Shown piece after piece: positions 1 through 46,880 of a DNA stretch of 64,000 nucleotides. Within the stretch, counting starts at the first letter, position 1; each line of letters starts with the position of its first letter. The translations under genes were made by a program, and so were the position numbers. The stretch is from positions 32,502 to 96,501 of the forward strand of contig QPMI01000228.1 of assembly GCA_004431415.1 (NCBI GenBank). The letters run 5' to 3'. This stretch comes from Cyanophora paradoxa CCMP329 (lineage: Eukaryota > Plantae > Glaucophyta). The notes beneath the pieces were generated by a model. The model was given only the letters and a program-made list of their open reading frames with translations, searched no databases and was not told the origin of the DNA.

Positions 1-2357
1 TGCCGCGTGAGACCACGGCTCGGGATCCAGCGGGGGCGGCGGACCGAAGCGGGGAGGGGATCGGGCGAGCGGCCGTCCAGTGCACCGGCGAGGGCGCAGG
101 CGTACTCTTCGTCGCTGATCCCTGCGCGCGCGCCGCCGCCGTCGTCAGGCCTGGGGATCATGCTGGGGCTCGAGCGGGGTGGAGGGCGTACTGGCGACGA
201 GGAGGAGCTCCTGGATGGCGCGCCAGCGCTGCTCGGCCGCCTCCGGCGTCGCCGCCCCGCGCCGCAGCTCCCGCTGCGCCGGCGTCAGCGGCGGGGCCCT
301 CGGGGCGGAGGGGCGAGGGCCTGCGCGGGCCTCGAGCGCGGAGCGGTCGAGGGCGAGCTCCAAGGCGGGGCGGGCGGGGAGGCCCCGCATCTCCTCCACG
401 AGGCCCGCCAGGCGCCCCAGCGACGCCTGCGGGCCCGCCCCCGGCGCCCCCGCAGCCAGCCGCCGGGCCGCCTGCGGGGAGAGGTCAACGTCAAGCGCTC
501 GCGCGGGCGAGCGAGGAAGCGAGAGGGGCGCACGGCGAGGAGGGAGGAGCCGTCGGCGCGGGCGAGGGCGGGCAGGCGGGCGGCGAGGCGGGGCCCCACG
601 CCCGGCGCGAGGGGCGACACGGCCTGCGCGGAGCCACTCGGCGAGGGCGGGTGGGGCGGGGCGGGCGGGCGGGCGAGGAGGCGGGCGGACGACGCGGGCG
701 AAGGCGGCCTCGTCGGAGGGGTCCTCGGCGAGCAGCAGAAGGGCCAGCAGCGCCGCCACCTCCCGGCCCCCGAAAAAGCCCTCCCCCGCCCCGACCAGCC
801 GGCACGGCACCCTGCGCGCCAGCGTGGGCGAGAGGCAGCAGGAGAGGGGCGCGGGGCGACGTGCACCCGTGGCGGGCCAGGCCGAGCTCGAGGGCGGGGA
901 CCTGCGAGTGGGCCCGCACCAGCACCGCCACCTCCCAAGGGCGGCACGCGCCCCCGGCCACCAGCTCTGCCGCCCCCCGGCCCTCAGCGGGGGGGGCAGC
1001 GAAGGAAGGGCTGCGAGAGCGGGCACCGGCGATGGAGGACGCAATGAATTCGGACTCGCTTCGGGGATCCCCCGCCGCCTGGACCACCACCGGTTCCCCC
1101 TCCCCGTTCCGCGTGTGCAGCGCCCCGCCTCCACCTCCCGCCGCCCCCGCCGTCCCCGCCCCGCCCCTGCGCGGCATTTCGCCCCGGCGCCGTGCCGGGG
1201 GAAAGATGACGGGGGTACCGCATGAGAGCGGACGCGCAGGCGAGGATGTTCTGCGTGGACCGGAAGCTCTCCCGCAGGGGCACCACCGTGGCCTGCGGAC
1301 AAGGATCGAGAGCAGCGGGGAGGAACGGGGGTACAGAGCGCGCCTCGGGAAATGCTTGGCGGAAGGCGGCGAAGGGGTCGAAGGCGCGGCCGGCGGCGCG
1401 CCAGCCGTAGATGCTCTGGTCGGGGTCCCCGACGCCCGTGAGGCCGCCGTGCCGCCGCGCCAGCTCCCGCACGATCGCGAAGTCCACCTCGCTGCAGTCC
1501 TGGAACTCGTCCACGAGCACGAAGCGAAAGCGGGCGGCCCAGGCGCCCCCCTCCAGCGGGTGCTGCCTCAGGAGCTCCGCCGTCTTCAGAATTAGATCCG
1601 TGAAATCGAGGAGGCAGCGCGCATGCAGCGCCGCGGCGTACGCCCGCGCCACCGCCTCCAGCTCCGCGCTCGACTCCACCAGGTCCTCCGGCCTCGCCCG
1701 CCCCGCCAGCATCGCTTGCGTGCGCTGCGGCCGCGCTCCAAGTAAGCGGGTGCAGTCGATCGGCCAGTTACAGGCGCGTGCACGAATGCGCACGACCGAC
1801 TTCGTCCGCTCGATGTAGTTCGCGCACTTCCCGAGGGCGATGCCCGTCACCCCGCACTCCTGCATCGCTTCCCGCAGGACGGTCTTTGCCTCCGCCTCAT
1901 CGACGACCAACCAGTTCGGCGGGAGGCCAACTACGTGCCCCAACCCTCGCAAGACGGTCGCACACACGCTGTGAAACGTCCCGACCTGCACGCGCGAGGG
2001 GCCTGCCCCATGCTCCCTCAGCACCGCTGTAATACGCTCTTGCATCTGCGGATCCGGTCGGTTGATCGCGCGAGTGCGAGGCCCAAGAACGGCGCCCGAC
2101 CTCCCCCGCGGCCTTCTTCGTGAAAGTCAAGCATAGAATCGCGTCAGCTGGAATCCCTTCAGAGGAGATCATCCGTGCAACTCTGTGCGCCGCCACTCGC
2201 GTCTTGCCGGCGCCTGCGGCCTCCGCGAGAACCGCAGGTGCGTGAGATTTGATCTCGGGGTTGGCGCTCTCCGGAACGCACCGGGACCGGCAAGGATGAG
2301 CAGAGCGCGGTTTGGGGCGCCCACGGCCTCTTCCTGCGCCTCGGAGAGTGCGGCCAT
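1..2357 (-). CDS. UvrD/PcrA/Srs2-family (SF1A) DNA helicase, multi-exon, 3' end runs off the window
   Basis: Spliced motifs: LSEAQEEAV (Q motif), ILAGPG-AGKT (Walker A), LTFTKKAA (Ia), VGTFHS, LDFTDLI, VLVDEFQD (Walker B), VGDPDQSIYGWR (III), ESFRSTQNIL (IV). ATG at 2357. Confidence 0.93.
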
Positions 2358-2736
2358 GGCTGGCTTGGATTTTGTGCACAGCTGGGTTCGCCCGGTTGCC
2401 TCCTTCACGTCACGAGGTGCGGAAGAGCCCCAGAGCGTCTTGCGTAGGCCGCTCGCATGTCGAACTCTCTAGCTGGCCCAGCTTGGCCCGGGCTGGCCGC
2501 GATTTCCGGGTATCGCGTTCTTGAGAGGGGGGAGGAAGGGAGGGGGAACATCTCTAGCCTGACTTCACACGAGCTCGAGATCCACAGCCCAGCCGTGCGT
2601 CCTGCGTGCGGATCAGTAAGTGCCAGAGGACACCGCCTGACTCCATCAATCGTGCATGTGAGCGCTCAGTGCGTTGACCCGGCCGCGCGCGCCCCTAGGC
2701 CTGCATACGTGCACGATCTAAACCGTGAGCAGCCAA

Positions 2737-5700
2737 ATGATGCAACAAGCGGGTAGGAGACGGCAATCTTTGCATGGAATCTGGAGCTTTTCGTTCTTTG
2801 AGGACGGGAACCTGCCGACCCGCTCGCCGGCAAATGAGGTGCGAGAAGATAAGCCTCATCTAGATTGGCACCTTTATGGCGCAGGAGCTCCTTCATTATT
2901 GAGCCCACCGGTCAGGTGAAACTCGGCGAGAAGTCGCGGATCCCCGGGGCATGGCAGGCGGACAGGCATGGGCTCGCCCCAGGCTCGGCGTCGACGTTCC
3001 TGCCCGGGCTCGGCGTGTACCGGCAGACCTTCGTGGTTGACGGCGCGTTCGAGCGGCGGCGGATTTTCCTGCGGATCGAGCGCGCGAAGGAGCGGGCTAC
3101 GCTCTGGGTGGCCTCGCCGACGATGCCGGCGGCGCGCTTCGAGCTGGACGCCTTCCCCGCCGACGTGGAGCTCACGCCGCACATCCTCCCGGGCGCCCCC
3201 GTGACCCTTACCCTCGCCGTCGAGGCCGGCGGGGGCGGCTGGGGCGGCCTCGCCGGCGAGCTCCTCCTCGAGGCCCGCCCCCGCACCTTCATCGAGAGCC
3301 TCCACGTCCTCCCCGACCCCGCATCCGGTCCCCGCCCGCCGGCCCTGTACCCCCCCACGCGCCGCCGCCGACCGCTGACCTGGGCGCAGGGACGGTGCGG
3401 GTGCGGGCGCGGCTGGACGGGCCCCTCTCGGGGGACCAGCGCCTGGAGCTGAGCGTGCTGGGCCGGGGCGGGGCGGCGGTGCCGTGCGAGGTGCGCGGCG
3501 GGGCGCTGAGCGGGGGCGAGCTGGACGCCGTGCTCGCGCCGGCCTCGGGGCCCCTCGAGCCCTGGCTCCCCGACGCCGGCCCCGAGGGCCCCGCCCTCTA
3601 CACCCTCCGCGCCGCCCTCCACGAGGGGGCCCCCGCACCCGGCGGCCCCGCCCTGGACGCCCAGGAGCGCTCCTTCGGCCTCTGCGGCGTGGCCGAGGCG
3701 GCGGGGCGGGCGGCCGTGCCCGGCGGCGAGCTCCTCCTGCGCGCCTGCATCGACCCGCTGCACCTCCCCCGGGACCTCGTGCCCCCGCCCGACGCCCGCT
3801 TCTTCGCCGAGCGCCTCGCCGCCGCCGCGCGCCTCGGCTTCAACTGCCTCGTCGTGCCCCGCGCCTCCCCGCTCGCCCCCTACCGCGCGGGGGCGGCCCA
3901 CGCGGCGCTGCCCGAGGAGCTCCTCGCCGCCGCCGACCGCGCCGGCCTCCTCGTCGCCCTCGAGGGGGAGGGCGCGCCCGCCGTCCTCTCCCGCGGGGAG
4001 CCGGCCCTGCGGCACCCTTCCCTCCTCCCCTTCGCCCTCGCCTGCCCCGCCACGCACCCCTTCCGCACCCTCGGCCCCCGCCCCGTGCCCCTCGAGTGGG
4101 TCGGCCCCCGCTCGGGGACCCTGCCGCTGGAGAACGCGGGGCGCGGGCGGGGTGGACGGCCGGCCCCGCCCCGCTGGAGGTGCCCCGGGGGTGCTGCCCC
4201 CGCGCGACGCGGCGGCCGTGCGGCAGCGCTCCGAGGCGGACTTCGCGGCGCGGCTCGCGGCCGCCGTGGAGTCCGCCCGCGCCCGCCGCCTCCCCGGCCT
4301 CGCCGCCCGCCTGCAGGACGCCCCGGCGGGCCCTGCGACGGCGCCCTCGGGCCCGACTCGGCCCCAAGGCGGCGGTCGCGGCGGCCCTCGCCCGCTGCAA
4401 CGCGCCCGTCGCCCTCCTCGCCGGCGGGGCGCGCCCCGCGTACCGCGCCGGCCCGAGGGCGCCGAGGTGCGCCTCGCGGCGCACAACGGGGGGGCCCGGC
4501 CGCTGGCCCCCGCCGACGGCCTTTGGGTAAAGTGGGAGCTGCTGCTCTCGGGCCGCCCCGCCGCCGCCGGGCGCCTCGCCGTGCCCCTCGGCCCCGACGC
4601 CGCCCTCGCCCCGGGGGCGGCCGCCCAGGCCGAGGCGCCCCTCGCCCTCCCGCTGGCGGCCGCCGGCGCCGGCCCCGCCGAGCTGACCCTCGTGGCGGAG
4701 CTGACAGACGGCGCCGGCGCGCGCCTCGCCGCCGGCGCCTGGCCGGCCTTCCTCCTCCCGCCGGCCCCCGCCGTCCTCGCGACGTGCCCGGGCCCCGCCC
4801 CGGCGCTGCGGGCGGCCCCGGGTCCGGAGGCGGCGGCGCTGGCGGCGGCGCTCGGGCTGCCGGCGGGCGAGGGCCGCCCCGCCGCGCTGCTCGTTGCGGG
4901 GGCGCGCCCCGAGGCCCTCGACGCCGCCGCCGTCGTCCTCGAGGCGGGCGGCACCGTCGTCGCCGCCGGGCCCGAGGCCGTCGCCGCGCTCGTCGGGGCC
5001 CCGCGCCCCCGCCCCCGGCCCCGACGCGCCCTTCGAAGCCGTCTACTCGGAGGAGGTGCGCGCTCCGAGGTGCCGCGGGACCGATCCCGCAAGACTTGAC
5101 CCACGCGATCGCAGCACGCGCTGGGGCACGGGCTGCCGGCCGACGTCCTCCCCTCCCACCTCAGCCGCGCCTTCGCCCGCTGGCTCCGCCCGGGGGCCGC
5201 CCCCGCCAAGCCCCTCCCCTCCTCCTCCTCCCGCGGGCGCATCCTCGTCCCGCAGGCGGGCGCCGGCGCGAGCCCCTGGCGGCGCCTCGCCGAGCGCGCC
5301 GCGGGGGGGCTCCCCGGGACCCTCGAGGGCGCGGCGGGGCCGCTGGTGCGGGCGGGCCCCGGGGGGCGGCGGCTGGTGGTGGGGGAGGCGCGCGTAGGTC
5401 CGGGCCTCCTCATAGCCCTCGCCTTCGACCCGTGGGAGGCGGAGGGCGCGCCGCGCCTCCTCCCCGAGGCCGAGCACCTCCTCGCCTCCGCCCTCCGCTA
5501 CGCCGCCTTCGCCGCCGCCCACCCCGCCCCCGCCCCCGCCCCCGCCCCCGCCCACCCCGCCCCCGCACCCGCCCCCGCCCCCGCCCTCCCTAGGCCTCCC
5601 ACGAGCCCCGCCGAGAAGGTGGCCTCCTTGGCGAGCGTGCCGGCAGCCCTGGCAGCTGCGGCGGCTGCGGAGGGGGCCGGAGCGGTGCCGGGGCCCCGGG

Positions 5701-34503: not shown

Positions 34504-35571
34504 TCCGCCGTGCGAGCCATCGAATCTTTCTTCCTGCTTCGCTGTTGTTCCTTGAAGTGGCGTAGGAAGCACGAGCTTAGTCATTTCAACCTCTTCTTTG
34601 CTTTCCGTGTACATTCCCCTGCGAGACTGTAAGTCGACTCTAGTGTACATGCCATGGCCCCGTGGCCAGCTGCCTCGTCGGACCCGGACAGCTAGCCGCC
34701 GGACCCCCCCTGTAGATTGAGTATTCTTTTCAAAACGGACTTCAAATTCGCTCAGCCTGCATGTAGCGTCGTAGATAGCTATAGCTATAGCTAGCTTACG
34801 CACTACTTTCGCAATTGTAAGCTTAAGCTTTCAGCTCCGGATCCCCCTTAAACAGTTGCAAGCCTAGCAGCTCCCTTTTCGCTTTCCGTTCTTCCACATC
34901 ATCACTCGTGTGTGTCACGTCCGACGGTCATAATGTCAGTGTCGCCGATTTTTTGAATCATGCCACAGGGCCGCCGGGCCATCAGATCTTGATTCCGACG
35001 TCGACTGCCCGATTCGGCGACTCAGTGTGACTGTGCATGTCATTGCCAAGTTGCGGCGTGTGGCCAGAGGCCACTGGCCATGGGCCTAGTGGGGGGTGCC
35101 CGTGGAGACTTCGAGTGTCGGGGCCCGGGGTGCCAGGGGTGGTCAAGGGGTGAAGCTTTTAAGGCGCAACTTGGCAATGCACTGCCAGGCTGCAGCTGTG
35201 TACTACGGTATACGCAGGCAACCGAACGTATATGGCTCATGATCAGGTGCAAGGCCCTGAACCTCATATGCAGACTCTGAGACGCGGCTCACTGATCATG
35301 AGTCAAGCCGGCATGCGCTCAGCCCTGGCACTGCGGCATGCAGGCCCTGCATCTGAGGCCTCCGCGTTCACGGTTTCTGGGCCCCGCCGCGGGGCCTGCA
35401 ACACCGTTCCACGCCAACTGCACTGCCGCCATCTCGTGGCCGGCGGTTGGCCTGGCGTCAGTGACGGTGGCTCCTCGTGCTCTCCACCCCAGCCCACGTG
35501 ACCACGACCGGTACCATCGGATGCACGTGCATGTGCTCTCGTGGCCCCACGGGCGCGATCGCGACCGACGG

Positions 35572-38500
35572 CTACGAGAAAGGGAAGGATTGCGCCCGCG
35601 GCCGCGAGTCGGCCGCCTCCGGGCCGAGCCGTCCCCGCGGCGCCCCCGCCGCCTCGCGGTCGGGCCCGCTGGGGGCGGGGGCGGGCAAAGGGGCCGCCTC
35701 GAAGCGGGGGGCGGGGGCGGGGGGAGGCGGCCGCCGGGGCGGGGAGCGGGAGGGGCCGTGGCCCTGGCCCCGGCCGGGGTGCACGTTGGCGTGGGCGTGG
35801 AGCTCGCGGTGGCGGCGGAGGTAGCGGCGGAAGGCGGCAAGCAGCTCGGCGCGCATCGTGGCGCCCGCCGCCAGCAGCGGGCCCACCGAGGCGCGCAGGT
35901 GCTCGAGCAGCTGCTCGGGGGGCGGGTCCTGCAGGGAGATGCGGTGGCCGCGCCCGAGCTGCGAGCCGAGGGCGCGGGCGTAGTCGACGGCCTCCTCCTC
36001 CGTCATCGCCGCCTTCAGCTTGAGGCTCACCGTCGGCACCTGCCGCACGTGGTACTGGCCCCGAACCCCCGCCCTCAGCGACGCGACGCAAAGGAGGGGG
36101 CGGGGGCACCTCGGAGCCGCGCCAGGTGGCCCAGCCCTCGCGCAGCGTCCACCCCGGGCAGTAGAGCTCCGACGCCGCCATCATCCGCTTCCCTGCGCGG
36201 CGCCCCGTCGCGCGCGCCCGGGGAGGCGGGGCGGTTGCGCGGGGCGGGGCGGGGCGGGCCCTGATGGGAGTAGGGGTTGCGGAAGTAGCGCGTGTCGGGG
36301 TCCGCGCGGACCTGCGGGGCGGGGGAGAGCGGGCGTCAGGGCCCGAGGGGCGGGGGCGGGGGGCGGGGCGGGGGCGGGGCGGGGCGGGGACCTGCTTGAG
36401 GTCGAGGAGGAGGGCGTCGTCGGAGTCGAGGGGGCCGGGGGCGCCGGCGGGGCGGGGGCGGGGCTCGAGGGCGACGAGGAAGCGGTCGCGGCGGGTCTCG
36501 GAGACGCGGGAGGAGAGGAAGCCGGCCTCCGCCACCTCGTACCCCTCCAGCACGTGCAGCTCGTTCCGGTTCTTGAAGTACTCCCTCAGCACCCCCAGCA
36601 TCTCCCCGCTGCCCGCCAGCACCCTCAGCGCGGGAGCCGGGGGCGGGTGCGGGGGCGGGCGGGGGCGAGGGGCGGGATGCGGACTCGGTGGTGGGGATGG
36701 CGTGGGCGCGCATCTCGCGGGCCCAGTGGCGGTTGGCGGCGAGGTAGGCGCGGGTGGAGAGCTCGCGCGCCGGCAGCTCCACCGCCTTCAGCGCCCGCAT
36801 CTCCGCGTACGGCGCCCGCGGGCTGCCCCCCCTCACCTCAGCCCCCGCTGCGCTGCGCGGGGCGCGGCGGGGCGGACTTGGCGAAGGCGTGGGCGTAGGC
36901 GGCGAGGAAGGCGTCGAGGGCGGGGCGGGGGAGGAGCTTCTCGGCAGGGACGGCGAGGCGGAGGGAGAGGGAGAGCCAGGCGCGGAGGACGTCCCACGTG
37001 AACGGGCCGTACCGCGACCGGTCGAAGTCCGCCATCGCGCACCCCTGCGCCCCCGCCCCCCGCTCAGTCTTCGTGCACATGGCCCGGGGCGGGGGCGGGG
37101 GCGGGGCGGGGGCGGGGGCGGGCCTGGAGGGTGCGGGCGTAGTTGTCGACGTGGGGGTTGCCGTGGAGGAAGACGCGGGGCACGCGGCGGCAGTCGACGA
37201 GCTCCACGAAGCGCGCCTGCATCCGCAGCACCGCGTTCCGGAAGAAGAAGTCCAGGCCCCTGCGCGCCCCCACCCCGCTCGCCCCCGCGCCGCGCAGGGG
37301 CGGGGGGCGGGGCGGGGCCCGCGCCGGCTGCGGTGGGTGTAGTTGGCGGCGACGTGGGGGGGGTCGAGGGCGGGGTCCTTGTCGAAGAGGTTGGGCCCCG
37401 CCTCGCGCGCCGCCCCCGCCAGCAGCGGCTCCAGCGTGCGCAGCACGGCCTCGAGGGTGGCCTCGGGGGCCCCCTCGGCGGGCACGACGCGGAAGCGGTG
37501 CTTGCGGGCGAGCAGCAGGTACTCGTTGTTCACGGCGGTCTGGAAGAGCACGAAGTTCTCCATGGGGTCCCCGCTGAGCTGCAGGTCCAGCCCCGCCTCG
37601 TAGTAGTTCAGCCGCGCCACCGCCCCCGCCCCGGCCCCCGCCCCCGCCCCCGCCCCGGGGCTGTGCAGGCTCCCCTCGGGGCGGAAGGGCGAGGGGGCGC
37701 CGGCGCCTCGGGGGGCGGCCGGGGAGGGGAGGGCGTCGGCCGCCGCCGCGCCCGGCCCGAGGGCCTCCACGCCGGCGCCGAGGCCAAGCTCCCCTTCCCC
37801 CTCCCCCTCCCCCTCCTCCTCCTCGTCCTCGTCGGTGGCGTCGTTCTCGGGGCGGCCGTCCTCGGAGGCCGGCCCCGGGCGCGGGGCGGCGTGCCGCGCG
37901 AGCACCCGCCCGATCGCGGCCCGCACGGGGAGGCGGAAGAAGAGGACGGCGTCGGGCGGGATGGCGAAGCTGTAGAGCGACTCCAGCCAGGGCGCCGCCA
38001 TCCCCCGCACCTGCAGCAGGTCCCCGCCGCCTCGGCAGCCTTGGCCGGGGGCGCGGGGCGGGGGCGGGCGGGGGCGGGGAGGCGGGCCTTGTCGCGGGCG
38101 AGGGCGGTGTAGAAGTAGCGGTCGCAGAGGACGACCTTGCCCTCCTGCAGGGCCGGCCGGATCACCGACAGCGTCCGCTCCGCTAGGTCCGTCGCCTGCG
38201 CCGCGCCCGGCGCCGCGCCCCCTGAGCGCCGCCGCCGGCCGGCGGCTCGCGAGGGAGGGACCTGCATCATGGAGAAGGTGATGGGGGTGAGCTTCTTGGC
38301 GCGCTTCGCCTGCCGCGTCGCCTCGTGCAGCAGCGGCGACGAGTTCCACCGCGTCTCCACCACCCCGACTGCACCCCCGCCTCACTCAGCGGGGCGGAGG
38401 GGCGGGGGCCGGAGGGGGGCTGAGGGGCCGCACTGCCGCGCTCCTCGAGGGCGGCGCGGACGAGGGCGAGCTGCGTGCTCTTGCCCGAGCCGTCGAGCCC

Positions 38501-41352
38501 CTCGAACACGATCAGGCGCCCCGGGAAGCCCGTCACGCGGCTCTTCGTTGGGCCCCCCGCCCCGCCCCCCCGCCCCGCCCCCCGCCCCATCGCGGCCGCC
38601 CCGACGGCGACGAGGAGGGCGGCGGCGGCGGGGGCGGCGGCGAAGGCGGCGAGGCGCTGGGACGGGTCGAGGTCAGGCAGGGCGAGGGCGCCGGCGAGGA
38701 GCAGCTTGCCCGCCACCACCGCCCCCGCGCCCCGCAGCCGCGCCCCGCCGCCCCCGCCTCCCCCTCGGCGCCCCGCGCCGCGAGCTCGGCCTGCAGCGCG
38801 AGCCGCGCGGGGGCCGCCGTCGCCGCGAGGAGCGCTGCCGCGCCCAGCATGCCCCGAGCTGCGCCCAGAGCGGAACCGCCACGCTGCGCCCGGCGCGTCA
38901 GGCCGGCCGGCCCTCGCAATCGACAGCGCGGGGCAGGGCGGGCGGGGCGGGCGCACGGGAGGAAGCCGGCGAGGAGCGGCGTGGCGGCGGCGAAGGCGGC
39001 GAGGCCGGCGGCGGCGAGGGCGAGGAGGGCCGGCGGGCGAGGCGGCGCGCGAGGGGCGCGTGCGCGAAGGCGCCGAGGGCGGCGCCGGCGGCGAAGGCGG
39101 CGGCGAGCACGGCCGCGAGGTGCGCCTCCGCGAGCACCTGCGCCCCGCCCCGCCTCGTCTCGTCTCGCGCGGCGGCCCCGCGGGCGGGGCGGGGCGGGGG
39201 CGGGCGGGCGGGCGCGCCTGCGTGGCGAAGAGGGCGGCGAGGAGGGCGCCCAGGCGCGGCGCCTCGAGGCAGCACGCCGCCGCCGCCGCCACCGCCCCCG
39301 GCCCCCCGGAGCCGGCGGCGACGGCGGGGCGGCGGGGGCGGCCCAGGGGCGCGCCGCCGCCGCCGCGAGGGCCTCGCCCCGGCAGACGGGCGAGGGGCGG
39401 GGCTCGGGCGCGGAAGCCCCCTCCTCGAGATCGGGGGCCCGCGGGGGTCGCCGGCGGGCTCGCGTCCGTCAGCCGCGGCGTCGAGCCGGGCTGCGGCGTC
39501 GGTGCCGGGGCGAGGCGAACGCCGGAGACCAACCGAGGGGCTGCCGCGCGGGTGAGAAGCCGAGGGCGGGCCGGGGCGGGGCGGGGCGGGCGGGCGCGAG
39601 GGCGCGAGGGGGGCGCACGGCGGGGCGGACGGCGGCGAGGGCGGCGGCGGCGGCGAGGAGGGGGGCCGGGGGCAGGAGGGGGGCGAGGAGCGGGGCGGCC
39701 AGGAGCAGCGGGGCGAGGGCGAGGAGGGCGCAGGCCTCGGCCAGGGGGCGCCACGGGCCCGGGGCGGCCTCGGGGAGCCCCGCGGCGGCGAGGGCGGCGA
39801 GGCGGAGGGTCTCGCCGGCGCCCCGCGCGAGGCCCTCCAGCAGCACCAGGCCGCCCGCCGGCGCGAGCAGCCGCCCGGGCTCCTCCCTCCAGCCCCGCCT
39901 GCCCGAGAGGGCGACGAGGGCAGCGAGGGCGGCCTGCGCGGCGGCGCGCACGAGGAGGGAGGCGGCGAGGAGGGCCCGCGCCCCCGCCCGCCCGTAGAGG
40001 CGGCCCCCGAGCACGCTGCCGGCCGCCGCCGCGGCGGAGGCGGCGGCCGAGAGGGCGGCGGCGGCGGGGGCCGGCGCGAGGGCGAGGAGGAGGAGCGTGG
40101 CGACGACCGCGAAGGCGCTGCTCGAGAGGCTGCACGCGAGACAGTCAAGCGGGAGGCGGCGGGAGCAGGCGGGGCGGGGCGGGCGGACGCGGAGGCGAGG
40201 GGGGCAAGGAGGAGGGGGGCGAGGGCGCGGGGCGGGGCGTGGGCGGGGGCGGGGGCTGGGGTGCCGGGGAGGCGCATGTGGGCGAGCTCCTGGCCGGCCT
40301 CCTTGCCGTGCTGCTCCAGCGCCTCGCTCAGGATCTCCTCCACGAGGCTCGCCCCGCCGGCCCCCTCCTCGCCGGCGGGGGCGACCATCTCGAGCTTGCG
40401 CTTCATCTGCTGCAGCTTGGAGAGGAGCTGGTCGAGGGTGCGCGACGTGTAGAAGGGCTGCCCCTCCAGCCGCCCCCGCACGAAGCGCGCGCGCGTGACC
40501 CGCCCCGTGCGCTTGTCGTGCTTCTTCAGGATCTTGTTGACGGCCGTGTAGTTGAGGAGCACGAACTGCTCGAGGAGGACGAGCTGCCGCCCCGCCTCCA
40601 CCAGCTCCTGCCGCGCCGCCCCCAGCTGCCCCGCCCTCCCCGCCTCCCCCCGCCCCGCCGCCCGCCGGATGCGCGCCCCCTGCGCCCCGCCGGCCTCAGC
40701 CGGGGGCGGCGGGCGGGGGGCGGACGGGGGGCACGAGGAGGGGCTCCCGCGGGTCGTCCCCCCCCGGGGCCTCCCCCGCGGCGAACTCGTCGAAGAGGGC
40801 CTCCACCCTGCCCGGCCCCCGGCCCCCGTCAGACCGGCCGCCTCCCCGCGGCGCGCGCAGGCGGGGCGGGCGGCGGGCGCGCATCGAGTCGAGGAAGAGG
40901 ACGCGGGCCTTGGACTCCTCCTCCTTCGCCCGGAAGAAGCGGTTGATCTTCTCCACCTCACCCTCCAGCATCTGCGCCCCGCCCGAGTCGGCCCCCGCGC
41001 CCCGCCCGCTCCGCGCCGGGGCCCCCGGACCGTGAAGAACTGGGCCTCCTCCTTGTCGGGGTCCGGCTTCCCCGGCGGCAGCGGCGCTGCGCAGGCCCCA
41101 GTCAGGAGCGCGGCGCGAGCGGTCGCTCCCGCCGGCCGCACCGCGGATCGCCTTGATGCATTTGATCTGTGGCGCAGCGCGTGAGGGGCCGGGGAGGAGC
41201 TGCGGGCGGCGCGGACCTGGCGCTTCAGCTCCTGCCGGCGTCGCGTGAGAGGGTGAGACGAAATTCGGAGCGGCGGAGCGGACCTTGTAGTTCAAGTAGT
41301 GCGCACGCCACTCGGGCACCGCCGACGAGGCGAGCGTCTTGGTAAATTTCAT
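35572..41352 (-). CDS. Multidomain fusion: SPX + MFS-like transmembrane region + thymidylate-kinase-like domain + DUF2252-like domain
   Basis: SPX: MKFTK..VPEW..YLNYK/ELKRQ/IK, EVEKINRFF, LNYTAVNKILKKHDK. Ala/Leu-rich TM helices at 40.1-38.6 kb with GGRLYGRAGAR (MFS motif A-like). LIVFEGLDGSGKST, WNSS, VLCDRYFYT, YYEAGLDL. FFFR..HGNPHVDNY..DFDRS..PF.WD..R and LDLKQ. Confidence 0.82.
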
Positions 41353-42077
41353 TCGAAGATGCGGCTGCGAAGACGCGAGCGCCTAGAGGATGCCTCGAAA
41401 TTCAAGGACCAGGAAGTCTTCAGCACGCTCGTGAGCCCCGAAGTCGCAGGGCGCGTGATCGGCGCGTACAAGTACCACAAACGTCGCGCGTACACAACTG
41501 CCTCAGCGCTCTCCGCCGCGCTCCCAGCCGCTGCGGTTCTCGCGTAGATTCGCCTGGTGACACCAGCACAACTCGCTGCCTATCTTGCTGACCGATGCGC
41601 GACTCGCTTCTGATCGTCTGATCGATTGTTGAGCTAGCGCATTGTTCGTCCGATCGATTGTTCAGTGATGTTGGGCCCGGCGGCTGATGCGGCGCGTGGA
41701 TGCGGCGCGCGCGTCCTGCCTTACGGTACGAAAATGCGCCGTCTGGGTAGGTCGGAGACGAGCTATGGCCCGCCGCATACAGCCCCAGACAAGTTGCCAG
41801 CCGCTGCCAGGGGTACAGTCCGATACGGATCGACGGCTGAAGGCCGCGAAATCCGACTGCTGCAGCGCAGTCTGACGCAGAATGTCGCAGGCAGCCGTGC
41901 GGCCGATAAATGTGAAGGTAGGGAAACCCTGCGAGCGGACCTGCGATAGCTAAGCCGCGCCCCAGGCCCTCGTGGCGAAGATGCGCGCGTGCAAGTGCGT
42001 GAAGGGCCTCGGCGGAGAGCCTGAGGTCCCTCTCGTTCCGTTTGTGAATTCTTTCCTCCCTTTCCTCGCCTGAACCG
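41206..42077. repeat. 872-bp direct repeat A, copy 1 (bidirectional SPX/GLTP promoter plus first exons of both genes)
   Basis: Matches 46009-46880 (offset 4803). Confidence 0.95.
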
Positions 42078-42501
42078 GGACCGTTCCGTTTGTGAATTCT
42101 TTCCTCCCTTTCCATTCTTCGAAAATACGAAGGCGGCCACGGCCTGCTGCGACTACTCACTCAGTCGCCAGCAGGTCGGGCTAATCGGACGGAGCCTCCA
42201 GCTCCGCTTGAACGCGTACGCAACCCGTTCATTTCCGTGCCTTACCTCTGGTACTGAGAATCTCGCAGGCCGCGGCCGAGCGGAAATCTCCGCTGGGTTA
42301 GTGGTGGGTCACAGCCTCGGCGCAGCGCGCGCGGCCGCCCCCCGCCGCGCGCGCAGCGCCTCGGCTGTCTCTTTCTCGCGCGAAAGAATAGCCTTCTCGG
42401 CGTTGTTTGTTTTTTAAAATACAATCATGTACCCAACTTGCAAGGTCCAAATTGCAACACGCATAACAGCGTACCCCCCTGGGGTCTCCTCCCCCGGGTC
42501 C

Positions 42502-42508
42502 TATAAAA
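42502..42508 (+). promoter_or_regulatory. TATA box within repeat B (second copy 45349-45355)
   Basis: CCTATAAAAG followed by GTCACGT; a downstream GTGAGT..CTGAC..CAG intron (42847-43034) suggests a transcribed leader. Confidence 0.55.
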
Positions 42509-44043
42509 GTCACGTACCCTGCTGCAAAAAGCACATTCGCCGCGTTTGAACTTCGATTCCGTGCGCCCAGACGCCGACACCTCGCCGCCCGCGCCGTCGC
42601 TCAAGTCTTACGACCGCACAGAACGATGCGAAATGCCCCGCCTATCGACAACGCCCTGGGCGGCGGCAAGCCCCTCCACGTCAATCGTTCGCCCACCGCC
42701 GCGGTTCGGGCTTCTTTCCTTCTTTTCCGACACTGCCGACTCGCTTTTCAGAGTCCTGCCTCGTTCCCTGCTGGAATCGTTGTCTTGGCCTCCCGATCAA
42801 ATTGCTGTCGGGCAGCGCCTTTAGCTCCTCACCGCGGCCACGCCCGGTGAGTGCAGCTCCTGCATCGCGCAGGCAAAAGCCTCTAGGCTAAACTCTGTCC
42901 AAATCCAGAGATCTAAATCCCGCTGAAGACGGCTCCGCTCAAATCACTGAGACTCGTCACGGAGCAGAAACAGAGCCAAGAGGCAGCGCGCGAGCGCACG
43001 TACCTCTCTCTGTACGGGAACTGACGTACGACAGCGCCCGCGAGGTGCGCGCATTCTTCTGCGCCTCGAGAACGGGGGACGCCGCCGCTTCTTGAACGGA
43101 AGCACGCCTAGCGCCTCCGCCACACCCGCGAGGGATCTAAATCCCTCGCTTCTATCCTACCGCGCGCCATACATGAGACGAGCGACTGCGAGCCTGACGG
43201 GCAGGGACTACCCTCAGGCGATGAGCTCTCCTCGACATCTCCGGTGGCACTGTCCACGCGCGTAGGCGTCCCGAAGACTTCGTCTTCGGTCGAATAAGGT
43301 GTTCTTCCGTTCCATTCCCGTGGACTTCGTCCTCGGTCGATTCTGCACCTCAATCTAATCTTTACCGCGTTCAGCCTCTGGCTCTTCGATTCTGAACTTC
43401 CGTGACGAGCAATCTATTCAAAACAAAGCCGCTTCAACCTCAACGTTTAACTCTGCGCTCTCGCGCTTCCCAACCATTACATCGACTGGTGGCGGCGCAT
43501 CGTCCTGCCAGCTCATGATCACTTGCCCATGCTCATCTGCAAGCTCCAACGATAACATCTCCCCCGGCCCGGCATCAGCCGCGAAGCTCAAGCAGGATCG
43601 GCCTCCACCGCCGCGTCAGCCACGTTCATCGTGTGCCTGCCCGCCCTCGCCCGAAACTTCACGTTCTAACCGGCCTGCAGCTGTCCTTTGAGTAGCTCCA
43701 TCAAATGCAGCAAAGCAGGGCGCCCTCCGCGCGCCAACACCAAGGACACAGCGTGTCCGGCAGCGCCCGCGATCCTCGAATCGTGCGTGCGTGCTTCTAA
43801 AACTGCGATCTTTCCGAGGTCTTAAGGACTGCCGCTGCTCCGCGCCGCAGAAGCGTCCAGAACGGCGCGGCTCTAACGATTGACCTCCACGCCCTGCATC
43901 GGCGCCGCGATCCTGGGATCGTACGCTGCGATCTTGCTGACCGTCGGTCTCTCTCTAAGCTCAGAATCTGCTCCTCCTCGCAGAAGCGTCCATGACGGGG
44001 TTCTTGCAGCTGCAGCTCGTGGCTCTTACGCCCACCCAGCGCG

Positions 44044-44840
44044 TGCGTGCTCTGCGCTCTTGCTCTTCCCGAGCTAGATTCCTGATCTTTCTCTGCCCAC
44101 AGAACAGCAGCTACATGCTCGCTTACCAGGTACGCGCCTCCAACCGCGCTTTCGGCGCTCGCGAACTGATTCCCGGGTGGCGCAGCACCCGAGCTGAAGC
44201 TCATCCCCCACACGAGCACATTCCTTTCATCTTCCTTTTTGGAAGGCTTCTCCTTGTCTCTCTCTCCGCCTCCGCGGTGCACCTCGCTTCAGCTCACTCC
44301 GAGTCAATCTCTGAGTCGGCTCACTTCTTACATGCGCACTTGCATGCTCCTGCAGGCCACGCTCTCTTCATCTACAGAGCTTTACTCTTCTCTTTGCCGT
44401 CCTGGCGTCGGCCCTCGATCTGATGCGCATCGGACCGGCTCATTCCAGTAGCGCGTGCGCATGCGTGCTCTGCGCTCTTGCTCTTCCCGAGCTAGATTCC
44501 TGATCTTTCTCTGCCCGCAGAACAGCAGCTATATGCTCGCTTACCAGGTACGCGCCTCCAGACACGCTTTCGGCGCTCGCCAACTGATTCCCGGGTGGCG
44601 CAGCAACCGAGCTGAAGCTCATCCCCCACACGAGCACATTCCTTTCATCTTGCTTCTCCTTGTCTCTCTCTCCACCTCCGCGGTGCACCTCGCTTCAGCT
44701 CACTCCGAGTCAATCTCTGAGTCGGCTCACTTCTTGCATGCGCACTTGCATGCTCCTGCAGGCCACGCTCTCTTCATCTTCAGAGCTTTACTCTTCTCTT
44801 TGCCGTCCTGGCGTCGGCCCTCGATCTGATGCACATCGGA
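44044..44840. repeat. Near-tandem duplication of about 390 bp (repeat C)
   Basis: 44044-44434 versus 44462-44840, scattered substitutions and a short indel. Confidence 0.9.
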
Positions 44841-46008
44841 TCTGCCCATTCCAACAGTGCTCGGCGCCAGCCTTCGCCCTGGGTTCGCCCTCCCCGTGCA
44901 CGCCTTCCAAACCCTGTAACAGATCTAGACATTGCGTCAGCGCTAGCCGCATTCTTGCCGCATTCTTCGAAAATACGAAGGCGGCCACGGCCTGCTGCGA
45001 CTACTCACTCAGTCGCCAGCAGGTCGGGCTAATCGGACGGAGCCTCCAGCTCCGCTTGAACGCGTACGCAACCCGTTCATTTCCGTGCCTTACCTCTGGT
45101 ACTGAGAATCTCGCAGGCCGCGGCCGAGCGGAAATCTCCGCTGGGTTAGTGGTGGGTCACAGCCTCGGCGCAGCGCGCGCGGCCGCCCCCGCCGCGCGCG
45201 CAGCGCCTCGGCTGTCTCTTTCTCGCGCGAAAGAATAGCCTTCTCGGCGTTGTTTGTTTTTTAAAATACAATCATGTACCCAACTTGCAAGGTCCAAATT
45301 GCAACACGCATAACAGCGTACCCCCCTGGGGTCTCCTCCCCCGGGTCCTATAAAAGTCACGTACCCTGCTGCAAAAAGCACATTCGCCGCGTTTGAACTT
45401 CGATTCCGTGCGCCCAGACGCCGACACCTCGCCGCCCGCGCCGTCGCTCAAGTCTTACGACCGCACAGAACGATGCGAAATGCCCCGCCTATCGACAACG
45501 CCCTGGGCGGCGGCAAGCCCCTCCACGTCAATCGTTCGCCCACCGCCGCGGTTCGGGCTTCTTTCCTTCTTTTCCGACACTGCCGACTCGCTTTTCAGAG
45601 TCCTGCCTCGTTCCCTGCTGGAATCGTTGTCTTGGCCTCCCGATCAAATTGCTGTCGGGCAGCGCCTTTAGCTCCTCACCGCGGCCACGCCCGGTGAGTG
45701 CAGCTCCTGCATCGCGCAGGCAAAAGCCTCTAGGCTAAACTCTGTCCAAATCCAGAGATCTAAATCCCGCTGAAGACGGCTCCGCTCAAATCACTGAGAC
45801 TCGTCACGGAGCAGAAACAGAGCCAAGAGGCAGCGCGCGAGCGCACGTACCTCTCTCTGTACGGGAACTGACGTACGACAGCGCCCGCGAGGTGCGCGCA
45901 TTCTTCTGCGCCTCGAGAACGGGGGACGCCGCCGCTTCTTGAACGGAAGCACGCCTAGCGCCTCCGCCACACCCGCGAGGGATCTAAATCCCTCGCTTCT
46001 ATCCTACC

Positions 46009-46880
46009 GCGGCGCGGACCTGGCGCTTCAGCTCCTGCCGGCGTCGCGTGAGAGGGTGAGACGAAATTCGGAGCGGCGGAGCGGACCTTGTAGTTCAAGT
46101 AGTGCGCACGCCACTCGGGCACCGCCGACGAGGCGAGCGTCTTGGTAAATTTCATTCGAAGATGCGGCTGCGAAGACGCGAGCGCCTAGAGGATGCCTCG
46201 AAATTCAAGGACCAGGAAGTCTTCAGCACGCTCGTGAGCCCCGAAGTCGCAGGGCGCGTGATCGGCGCGTACAAGTACCACAAACGTCGCGCGTACACAA
46301 CTGCCTCAGCGCTCTCCGCCGCGCTCCCAGCCGCTGCGGTTCTCGCGTAGATTCGCCTGGTGACACCAGCACAACTCGCTGCCTATCTTGCTGACCGATG
46401 CGCGACTCGCTTCTGATCGTCTGATCGATTGTTGAGCTAGCGCATTGTTCGTCCGATCGATTGTTCAGTGATGTTGGGCCCGGCGGCTGATGCGGCGCGT
46501 GGATGCGGCGCGCGCGTCCTGCCTTACGGTACGAAAATGCGCCGTCTGGGTAGGTCGGAGACGAGCTATGGCCCGCCGCATACAGCCCCAGACAAGTTGC
46601 CAGCCGCTGCCAGGGGTACAGTCCGATACGGATCGACGGCTGAAGGCCGCGAAATCCGACTGCTGCAGCGCAGTCTGACGCAGAATGTCGCAGGCAGCCG
46701 TGCGGCCGATAAATGTGAAGGTAGGGAAACCCTGCGAGCGGACCTGCGATAGCTAAGCCGCGCCCCAGGCCCTCGTGGCGAAGATGCGCGCGTGCAAGTG
46801 CGTGAAGGGCCTCGGCGGAGAGCCTGAGGTCCCTCTCGTTCCGTTTGTGAATTCTTTCCTCCCTTTCCTCGCCTGAACCG
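46009..46880. repeat. 872-bp direct repeat A, copy 2 (includes truncated SPX exons at 46009-46155)
   Basis: Matches 41206-42077. Confidence 0.95.

Follow-up and report, generated by a model that had tools for sequence, protein, structure and literature searches.

In a 64,000-nt window of Cyanophora paradoxa CCMP329 (contig QPMI01000228.1, positions 32,502-96,501 of the forward strand; all positions below follow the numbering of this window), one intron-rich gene runs on the minus strand from 41352 to 35572 and consists of four parts: an SPX domain, a divergent MFS transporter, a thymidylate-kinase-like P-loop domain and a DUF2252 domain. Judged by sequence, the kinase domain belongs with the PPK3 family of polyphosphate kinases and not with the canonical dTMP kinases. 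The reading that we favour, with moderate confidence, is that the product is an SPX-gated, membrane-tethered polyphosphate/nucleotide phosphotransferase of the PPK3 type, the activity being predicted. PPK3, SPX fusions and DUF2252 are each known, and it is their combination that is new. An earlier annotation made from the letters alone (the sequence-only reading) had called the architecture undescribed, and we found no paper describing it in the literature on SPX-thymidylate kinase proteins, algal and dinoflagellate SPX classes, PPK3 or Cyanophora SPX-MFS proteins.

The window was searched as stop-free frames and single exons, and structure models were built from orthologs. The G+C content is 77-87 % over 35500-41000 and 52-68 % on both flanks, and no drop inside 35500-41000 is comparable to the drops at both gene ends. 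All six frames are open, so lists of open reading frames (ORFs) mean little by themselves. When the minus-strand frames were compared with Pfam, matches were obtained to the N- and C-terminus of SPX (PF03105; 41352-41284 and ~40613-40482, with 42.3 and 36.8 bits against a gathering cut-off of 27.8), to the P-loop of Thymidylate_kin (~38500-38420, with a second piece near 38180-38100) and to DUF2252 (37035-36877). In the case of DUF2252 (PF10009; cut-off 22.3 bits) the single window exon reached 16.2 bits and the orthologs 37-75 bits. A family profile made from 26 full-length members was then mapped onto the window, with which it is colinear from 40182 to 35800: the last transmembrane (TM) helix with the P-loop corresponds to 38677-38432 (E-value 8e-17), and nine more pieces follow down to 35800 (E-values 3e-4 to 8e-40). 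The order SPX-MFS-kinase-DUF2252 given by the sequence-only reading is the order found, and it recurs in a single uninterrupted ORF of 1297 aa on a 3965-nt contig of a public run (P0120; SPX, MFS_1, Thymidylate_kin and DUF2252).

The many TM helices noted earlier behind the SPX domain are borne out for the N-terminal half of the MFS by the family profile (E-value 7e-16); the C-terminal half matches weakly but colinearly, and Pfam MFS_1 (PF07690) gave no match on the frames of the window. The C-terminal half is very Ala/Gly-rich and changes frame, and therefore holds several introns. Orthologs P0120 and P0008 pass Pfam MFS_1, and by NCBIfam the transporter resembles DHA3-type carriers (TIGR00900, 79.6 bits in P0008). 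No solved MFS structure was matched by the MFS of the family.

Of four RNA runs aligned, three (X1, X4 and X8, from three studies) have joints that read CT..AC on the plus strand, and the RNA therefore derives from a minus-strand gene; many joints with sides of 20-22 nt in GC-rich low-complexity sequence were discarded as cross-matches. X1 record 2 (894 nt) and X4 record 16 (873 nt) both consist of 37607-37334, 142 bases left unaligned owing to a repeat filter, 37047-36878, 36822-36685 and 36608-36475, while X8 contigs cover 37131-37260 and join 36178-36110 to 36054-35898. The 142 unaligned bases are exactly the FLHGNPHVDN exon 37259-37124 minus three ambiguous bases, plus nine bases beyond 37334, which fixes the two GC-AG introns flanking this exon (37324-37260 and 37123-37045). 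Reading phases close across every kinase-to-DUF2252 junction. One spliced RNA thereby carries, in frame, the kinase C-terminus together with at least four exons of DUF2252. The single transcript expected by the sequence-only reading is thus bridged by spliced contigs from kinase to DUF2252, and by none across 38250-38957. The same reading had the last TM helix share an exon and frame with the P-loop, and the helix, the ..AAAMGRG.. linker and FPGRLIVFEGLDGSGKST do lie in a single stop-free frame (38677-38434). Together with the unbroken coding composition and the single-ORF homologs, this shared frame suggests that one transcript also spans the MFS and the kinase.

When one stop-free frame (36841-38385, minus strand) was compared using phmmer with 1.84 billion representatives, 116 matches were obtained, many of them 1000-1300 aa long. 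By Pfam the long matches combine MFS_1, Thymidylate_kin and DUF2252/APH, and the named ones are Elusimicrobiota proteins (dozens) labelled 'dTMP kinase'. Among the eukaryotic or eukaryote-like members, P0120 has all four parts, a protein of Ancoracysta twista (P0004, EukProt) has SPX, kinase and DUF2252 without an MFS, and a partial Symbiodinium 'tmk' (P0020) was also found. Another member, P0011, carries kinase and DUF2252 after a TM-rich N-terminal region in which Pfam finds no MFS and no SPX domain could be demonstrated; it adjoins a tandem paralog. On its scaffold (L002; metagenomic, 66 % G+C; genes at 1-1509 and 1609-5565) the second kinase-DUF2252 gene ends just upstream of P0011, apparently without introns. 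Three proteins of the rotifer Rotaria sordida (P0033, P0118 and P0119; ~1350 aa) have kinase and DUF2252 after a 450-aa N-terminus without a Pfam match, probably a case of horizontal acquisition in an animal.

The affinity of the kinase domain was determined by comparison with solved structures. Residues 180-420 of P0004 matched the PDB group 2plr/4nzy/4rzx/5h70, the 'probable thymidylate kinase' of S. tokodaii, with 131.5 bits (E-value 2.6e-37), whereas the best canonical thymidylate kinase (TMK) reached 67 bits; by structure (Foldseek) the 2plr group was again on top. The exon frames of the window behave alike, with E-values of 3e-9 to 2plr versus 7e-3 to canonical TMKs in one frame and a match to 2plr only in the second. 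As a control, an actinobacterial MFS-TMK fusion (P0185) gave 166 bits to the canonical TMK of P. aeruginosa and 53 bits to 2plr. This reversal indicates that the comparison discriminates and that the actinobacterial fusion is independent. The kinase is ~32-34 % identical to STK_15430, and the P-loop Lys (GLDGSGKST) and the Arg of the DRX motif (CDRYFYT), both present in the window, are invariant among 33 diverged modules (alignment A1).

Saci_2019 and Saci_2020, both annotated as thymidylate kinases, form the heteromeric polyphosphate kinase PPK3 (PMC12995831, J Biol Chem, Feb 2026). The catalytic subunit, Saci_2019, has polyphosphate kinase activity and no dTMPK activity, and STK_15430 (S. 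tokodaii, PDB 5h70) is a homolog of this subunit, cPPK3 (PMC12995831). PPK3 is reversible, the Sulfolobus enzyme strongly favouring the formation of ATP from polyphosphate and ADP, and the DRX Arg is kept in catalytic subunits and lost in the rPPK3 partner (PMC12995831). PPK3-clade genes neighbour PPX, CHAD, SixA/PhoE, NUDIX and Pst genes, and PPK3 operons always carry an rPPK3 partner and are mostly without PPK1 (PMC12995831). This work, the best match to 2plr/5h70 and a fusion to Ppx-GppA described next agree with the earlier statement that the WNSS/YYEAG.D kinase is an atypical subfamily tied to polyphosphate genes.

The closest standalone relatives of the kinase (~50 % identical) are found in Acidobacteriota as overlapping tandem pairs of TMK paralogs, and both members of the pair matched 2plr far better than canonical TMKs (201 and 143 bits). 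Fusions of this kinase type to Ppx-GppA occur in Phycisphaerales, and elsewhere there are fusions to an inorganic pyrophosphatase domain and to NUDIX. In one partner of an Acidobacteriota cPPK3-like gene (L009, 7753-8529) the DRY is kept and the P-loop reads GAGRTT, with Lys changed to Arg, a route of inactivation that differs from the loss of the DRX Arg reported for archaeal rPPK3. The pyrophosphatase fusions (domain PF18823) are P0019 (2575 aa), P0015 and P0014; P0019 additionally contains an ADP-ribosyltransferase of 'polyvalent proteins', a hint of use in mobile-element or conflict proteins.

Polyphosphate genes were also found around the bacterial homologs, where the sequence-only reading had directed attention. 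Six Elusimicrobiota loci were examined, whose proteins are in several cases less than ~50 % identical to one another. A metallophosphoesterase gene lies directly downstream of the fused gene in all six, where the stop codon of one gene often overlaps the start codon of the next. In four of them it is followed by a second MFS gene and PPK1, then by CYTH and His_Phos_1; of the others, one shows CYTH beside a PPK fragment, and in the last CYTH occurs with no PPK within 10 kb. PPK1 is thus within 10 kb in five of the six loci (a fragment in one of the five), CYTH is counted in five, and PhoB/PhoR-like pairs are nearby. Because all six loci come from one phylum, common descent rather than selection may account for some of this synteny. 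No second TMK-like gene that could be an rPPK3-like partner was found in the six bacterial loci or near the gene in the window.

DUF2252 has a protein-kinase-like fold with swapped lobes (PMC9758233; also a 2026 preprint). The two-domain model of P0004:180-794 had a pLDDT of 89.8 and a pTM of 0.79, and its DUF2252 part alone 94.4 and 0.91. When this model was compared with the DUF2252 clusters of the ESM Atlas, TM-scores of 0.81-0.82 were obtained; a Foldseek search of PDB gave no match. We also tried to name a substrate class by VIA-align and rejected the result as too weak (Z at most 5.5; cystatin-like sheets ranked first, and small-molecule kinases reached Z 4.2-4.9). The catalytic loop reads HG[N/S]PHxxN in the fused members inspected and in standalone proteins of the same subfamily (HGNPHVDN in the window), against GDCHVEN in the one canonical DUF2252 sequence used for comparison (Cupriavidus) and HGDCHAGN in YihE. 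By this alignment the canonical catalytic Asp is gone from the fused DUF2252, with Asn or Ser in its place, while the DFD motif, the strand lysine and a number of Arg, His and Glu residues are invariant.

The SPX domain was expected to have intact ligand-binding clusters (YLNYKELK and KILKKHDK), and both were recovered. The inositol-pyrophosphate-binding residues are Y22 and K26 in MKF...YLNYK|ELK and the K-x-x-K-K-x-x-K of NKILKKHDK. In the numbering of the ScVtc4 work, the phosphate cluster is Tyr22, Lys26 and Lys131 and the lysine surface cluster Lys127, Lys130 and Lys134. A 52-nt intron read from the sequence (41283-41232) splits the first motif as YLNYK|ELK, and the following micro-exon restores the SPX consensus YxxYKxLK; K26 hinges on this predicted exon. 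SPX domains are cytosolic and commonly gate transporters to which they are fused, as in PHT5/VPT1, XPR1 and Pho91.

From these parts a mechanism can be proposed in which the SPX, P-loop kinase and DUF2252 domains would face the cytosol and the MFS would anchor the protein in the membrane. SPX is cytosolic, and behind an N-in MFS of 12 TM helices the kinase module would be cytosolic too. The PPK3-type P-loop domain would move phosphate between polyphosphate and ADP/ATP, DUF2252 probably serves as a permanently attached partner or regulator in place of the inactive archaeal rPPK3, and SPX would act as a switch of the enzyme, and perhaps of the transporter, that responds to the level of inositol pyrophosphates. 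Ancoracysta has SPX, kinase and DUF2252 without a transporter, which argues that SPX regulates the kinase module itself. The enzyme activity and its direction, the role of DUF2252, the cargo of the MFS, the gating by SPX and a coupling of transport to phosphotransfer are what we infer for the Cyanophora protein.

Several points weigh against this reading. The enzyme activity of the fused clade is a prediction by similarity. A quick tree, made without the Sulfolobus sequences and with one long branch as its root, shows two sister clades with moderate support, the fused one (SH-aLRT 83) and that of standalone, PPX-fused and partner sequences (90). The fused clade is not nested in the latter and could therefore have a different second substrate. 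The fused family has no rPPK3 and has PPK1 adjacent, unlike the reported PPK3 operons. MFS carriers move small solutes and not polymers, so there is no evident VTC-like coupling between synthesis and translocation. The dTMP-kinase equivalog TIGR00041 (cut-off 83.25 bits) scores 104 bits in P0004, 98 in P0008, 80.6 in P0289 and 80.4 in P0120. No RNA contig is listed across 38250-38957, so the MFS-to-kinase join is without direct RNA support, and an in-frame ATG lies at ~38590, between the MFS and the P-loop.

The TIGR00041 scores and the database label 'dTMP kinase' would fit a P-loop domain acting on dTMP or other nucleoside monophosphates, in a transporter-kinase for nucleoside/nucleotide salvage, comparable to the actinobacterial 'bifunctional MFS transporter/dTMP kinase'. 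Fusions of MFS and TMK are common in Actinomycetota, and dUTPase/DCD and HAD genes lie upstream in one bacterial locus. TIGR00041 evidently also captures PPK3-type proteins at or above its cut-off, which accounts for the database name dTMP kinase of the entire family. However, the kinase of the actinobacterial fusions is a canonical TMK, and these fusions score the opposite way to the family described here, which prefers 2plr. In addition, the operon partners are PPK1, CYTH and phosphatases rather than genes of nucleotide metabolism, and Saci_2019, of the same subfamily, is without dTMPK activity (PMC12995831). We consider a salvage kinase unlikely.

No less unlikely is that the kinase-like domains have no catalytic role, sense ATP/ADP or polyphosphate and, together with SPX, only gate an MFS phosphate or anion carrier. 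The lost catalytic Asp of DUF2252 and the frequent gating of fused transporters by SPX would agree with this; on the other side, many basic residues besides the P-loop Lys and the DRX Arg are invariant across the 33 diverged sequences, and the Ancoracysta protein keeps SPX, kinase and DUF2252 with no transporter to gate. Two adjacent genes, an SPX-MFS gene ending before ~38600 and a kinase-DUF2252 gene starting at the ATG near 38590 (MGRGAG...FPGRLIVFEG), would suit the gap in RNA contigs and the occurrence of kinase-DUF2252 without MFS in P0004 and in P0009 (MFS as a separate upstream ORF), but are improbable given that a single stop-free frame holds the last TM helix, linker and P-loop and aligns with the fused homologs over all three, that the G+C content stays high throughout and that P0120 and the bacterial orthologs are single ORFs.

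More tentatively than the PPK3-type phosphotransferase itself, we propose a possible history in which some eukaryotes (Cyanophora, Ancoracysta, the source of P0120 and perhaps Symbiodinium and the rotifer) received a membrane-bound PPK3-type kinase from bacteria resembling Elusimicrobiota and brought it under SPX control, with a catalytically altered DUF2252 pseudokinase replacing rPPK3 as the activator. They would thereby have gained a second enzyme, independent of VTC, that makes or mobilises polyphosphate at a membrane. Within the fused clade of the tree, a single bacterial sequence clusters with the eukaryotic P0004, P0120 and P0011 (84/91), which fits a bacterial origin of the eukaryotic fused genes and is not proof of it.

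The features of the gene are listed in Table 1. The kinase and DUF2252 part alone contains at least nine introns. The short intron placed at about 37270-37330 by the sequence-only reading is real (37324-37260, 65 nt, GC-AG) but is one of these and not the only one. Three of the about nine resolved introns have GC-AG and not GT-AG borders (38087-38011, 37324-37260 and 37123-37045), two of them fixed by the arithmetic of the RNA contigs and the first, after the CDRYFYT exon, predicted from the genomic sequence. All intron lengths are 52-79 nt, and several introns are rich in CCGCCCC repeats.

Table 1 Features of the SPX-MFS-kinase-DUF2252 gene, in 5' to 3' order, and of its duplicated 5' end
Feature	Position	Strand	Evidence
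Exon 1, start codon at 41352, first SPX helix MKF...PEWRAHYLNYK with Tyr22	41284-41352	-	Pfam SPX profile positions 1-23, E 1.3e-10; GT donor follows, splice predicted
Exon 2, 15-nt micro-exon ELKRQ with Lys26	41217-41231	-	AG acceptor 41233-41232, GT donor 41216-41215; predicted
Middle SPX exons (~41166-41142, 41086-41031, 40971 onward), reading IKCIKAIR / PDKEEAQFFT / MLEGEVEKINRFF	40700-41166	-	Frame changes with GT..AG borders, SPX-like helices; putative, borders uncertain
C-terminal SPX helices, lysine cluster in NYTAVNKILKKHDK	40247-40660	-	Pfam SPX profile positions 293-336, E 6e-9; tblastn of P0120 and P0004; unspliced RNA contigs over 40247-40640
MFS N-terminal half (~TM1-6), family motifs GGRL..R and LARG	39472-40182	-	Profile positions 196-315 at 40182-39796, E 6.8e-16; RNA 39690-40116
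MFS C-terminal half	38680-39471	-	Weak colinear profile matches 39140-39039 (E 0.007) and 38862-38746 (E 5.9); hydrophobic segments
Last TM helix, Gly-rich linker and P-loop FPGRLIVFEGLDGSGKST	38434-38677	-	One stop-free frame; profile positions 557-643, E 8e-17; Pfam Thymidylate_kin positions 1-30
Kinase exon, RWNSS and Lys/Arg-rich loop RQAKRAKKLTP	38262-38368	-	Best PDB match 2plr residues 35-66; profile E 1.4e-9; borders from sequence
Kinase exon, DRX motif CDRYFYT, catalytic Arg kept	38088-38195	-	2plr residues 67-105; profile E 1e-16
Long exon: kinase core strand, low-complexity lid insert, NYYEAGLD, kinase C-terminus, FDKDP linker	37325-38010	-	Profile positions 715-878, E 8e-40; RNA 37607-37334; 2plr
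DUF2252 exon, altered catalytic loop FLHGNPHVDN	37124-37259	-	RNA X8 record 22 over 37131-37260; profile E 3e-21
DUF2252 exon, DFDRS metal-binding motif	36878-37044	-	RNA contigs; Pfam DUF2252 profile positions 67-116; profile E 2e-18
DUF2252 exon	36685-36822	-	RNA joints 36823-36877 and 36609-36684 in X1, X4 and X8; profile E 4e-10
Three DUF2252 exons (~36608-36380, 36320-36255, 36200-36110), strand lysine in LDLKQV	36110-36608	-	Profile E 3e-9, 3e-4 and 9e-7; RNA over 36475-36608 and 36110-36178; inner borders approximate (repeat 36231-36474)
Last exon: DUF2252 C-terminal helices GSQLGRGH...RRYL, Ala/Pro-rich tail, TAG stop 35574-35572	35572-36054	-	Profile E 1.4e-26; RNA joint 36055-36109, contigs 35731-36054 and 35534-35704
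Second copy: upstream region, exons 1-2, first 10 nt of intron 2	46009-46880	-	100 % identity to 41206-42077; tblastn of P0120 residues 1-23 at 46155-46087

The 5' end of the SPX gene is present twice, 4803 nt apart, in an 872-nt direct repeat of 100 % identity (41206-42077 and 46009-46880). A second direct repeat of ~1052 nt is also 100 % identical with one indel (42113-43164 and 44961-46011). The two pairs are nested as A-B-X-B-A on the plus strand, where A is the 5' end of the SPX gene, and tandem copies of ~406-418 nt (95 % identical) lie between them at 44039-44860. We rejected the match at 46155 as a second SPX gene, as it is the exact duplicate of the 5' end. As possible explanations of the duplicate we consider an alternative first exon, an insertion into intron 2, a segmental duplication and an assembly artefact.

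To our knowledge, the SPX-controlled VTC complex is the only well-established route to polyphosphate in eukaryotes, and we know of no polyphosphate synthase in animals. Bacterial-type PPK1 and PPK2 are rare in eukaryotes. The first description of PPK3 dates from 2026 and, as far as we know, covers no organisms other than archaea and a few bacteria. The fusion gene suggests a second, undescribed eukaryotic system of polyphosphate control besides VTC. If this is true, PPK3 would extend to eukaryotes, and DUF2252 and a large, mis-named family of bacterial 'dTMP kinases' would gain their first functional context. A compact module, soluble as SPX-kinase-DUF2252 in Ancoracysta, would be available for studies of how inositol pyrophosphates control polyphosphate and ATP buffering, with relevance to the engineering of algal phosphorus uptake.

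Among known systems, archaeal PPK3 (Saci_2019/Saci_2020; STK_15430, 2plr/5h70) is by far the best match in sequence and structure. The fused gene shares with it the WNSS and EAG.D motifs and, through its bacterial relatives, a polyphosphate gene context. It differs in having no rPPK3 partner, in its attached DUF2252, MFS anchor, SPX domain and eukaryotic host, and in the co-occurrence of its bacterial orthologs with PPK1. The domain resembles canonical DUF2252 (PF10009) in fold, DFD motif and strand lysine, with Asn or Ser in place of the catalytic-loop Asp of GDxHxxN.

The VTC complex of fungi, algae and protists has the same SPX inositol-pyrophosphate residues and is likewise a polyphosphate-linked membrane protein that joins sensor, enzyme and membrane. 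The fused gene was proposed earlier to be analogous but unrelated to VTC, and this holds: it has no triphosphate-tunnel and no VTC/DUF202 domain, the P-loop kinase being the catalytic candidate, and neither the VTC4 triphosphate-tunnel domain nor the VTC transmembrane domain was matched by Pfam in any frame of the window or any ortholog. PHT5/VPT1 proteins also begin with SPX followed by MFS but have no kinase domains, whereas the MFS here resembles the DHA3 type and, like the kinase module, probably derives from a three-part protein of bacteria.

That three-part core (MFS_1, Thymidylate_kin and DUF2252) is orthologous to the Elusimicrobiota 'dTMP kinase' of ~1200 aa, with 41-49 % identity over kinase and DUF2252 and the same motifs. 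In place of SPX, the bacterial proteins have a hydrophobic segment at the N-terminus and ~180 aa of disordered sequence. They are encoded in a PPK1/CYTH/Metallophos operon and carry a generic name, and we found no study of them. Finally, the actinobacterial MFS/dTMP kinase (MFS_3 and Thymidylate_kin) also joins an MFS and a kinase of TMK fold in this order in one protein, but its kinase is a canonical TMK without DUF2252 and the fusion is an independent one.

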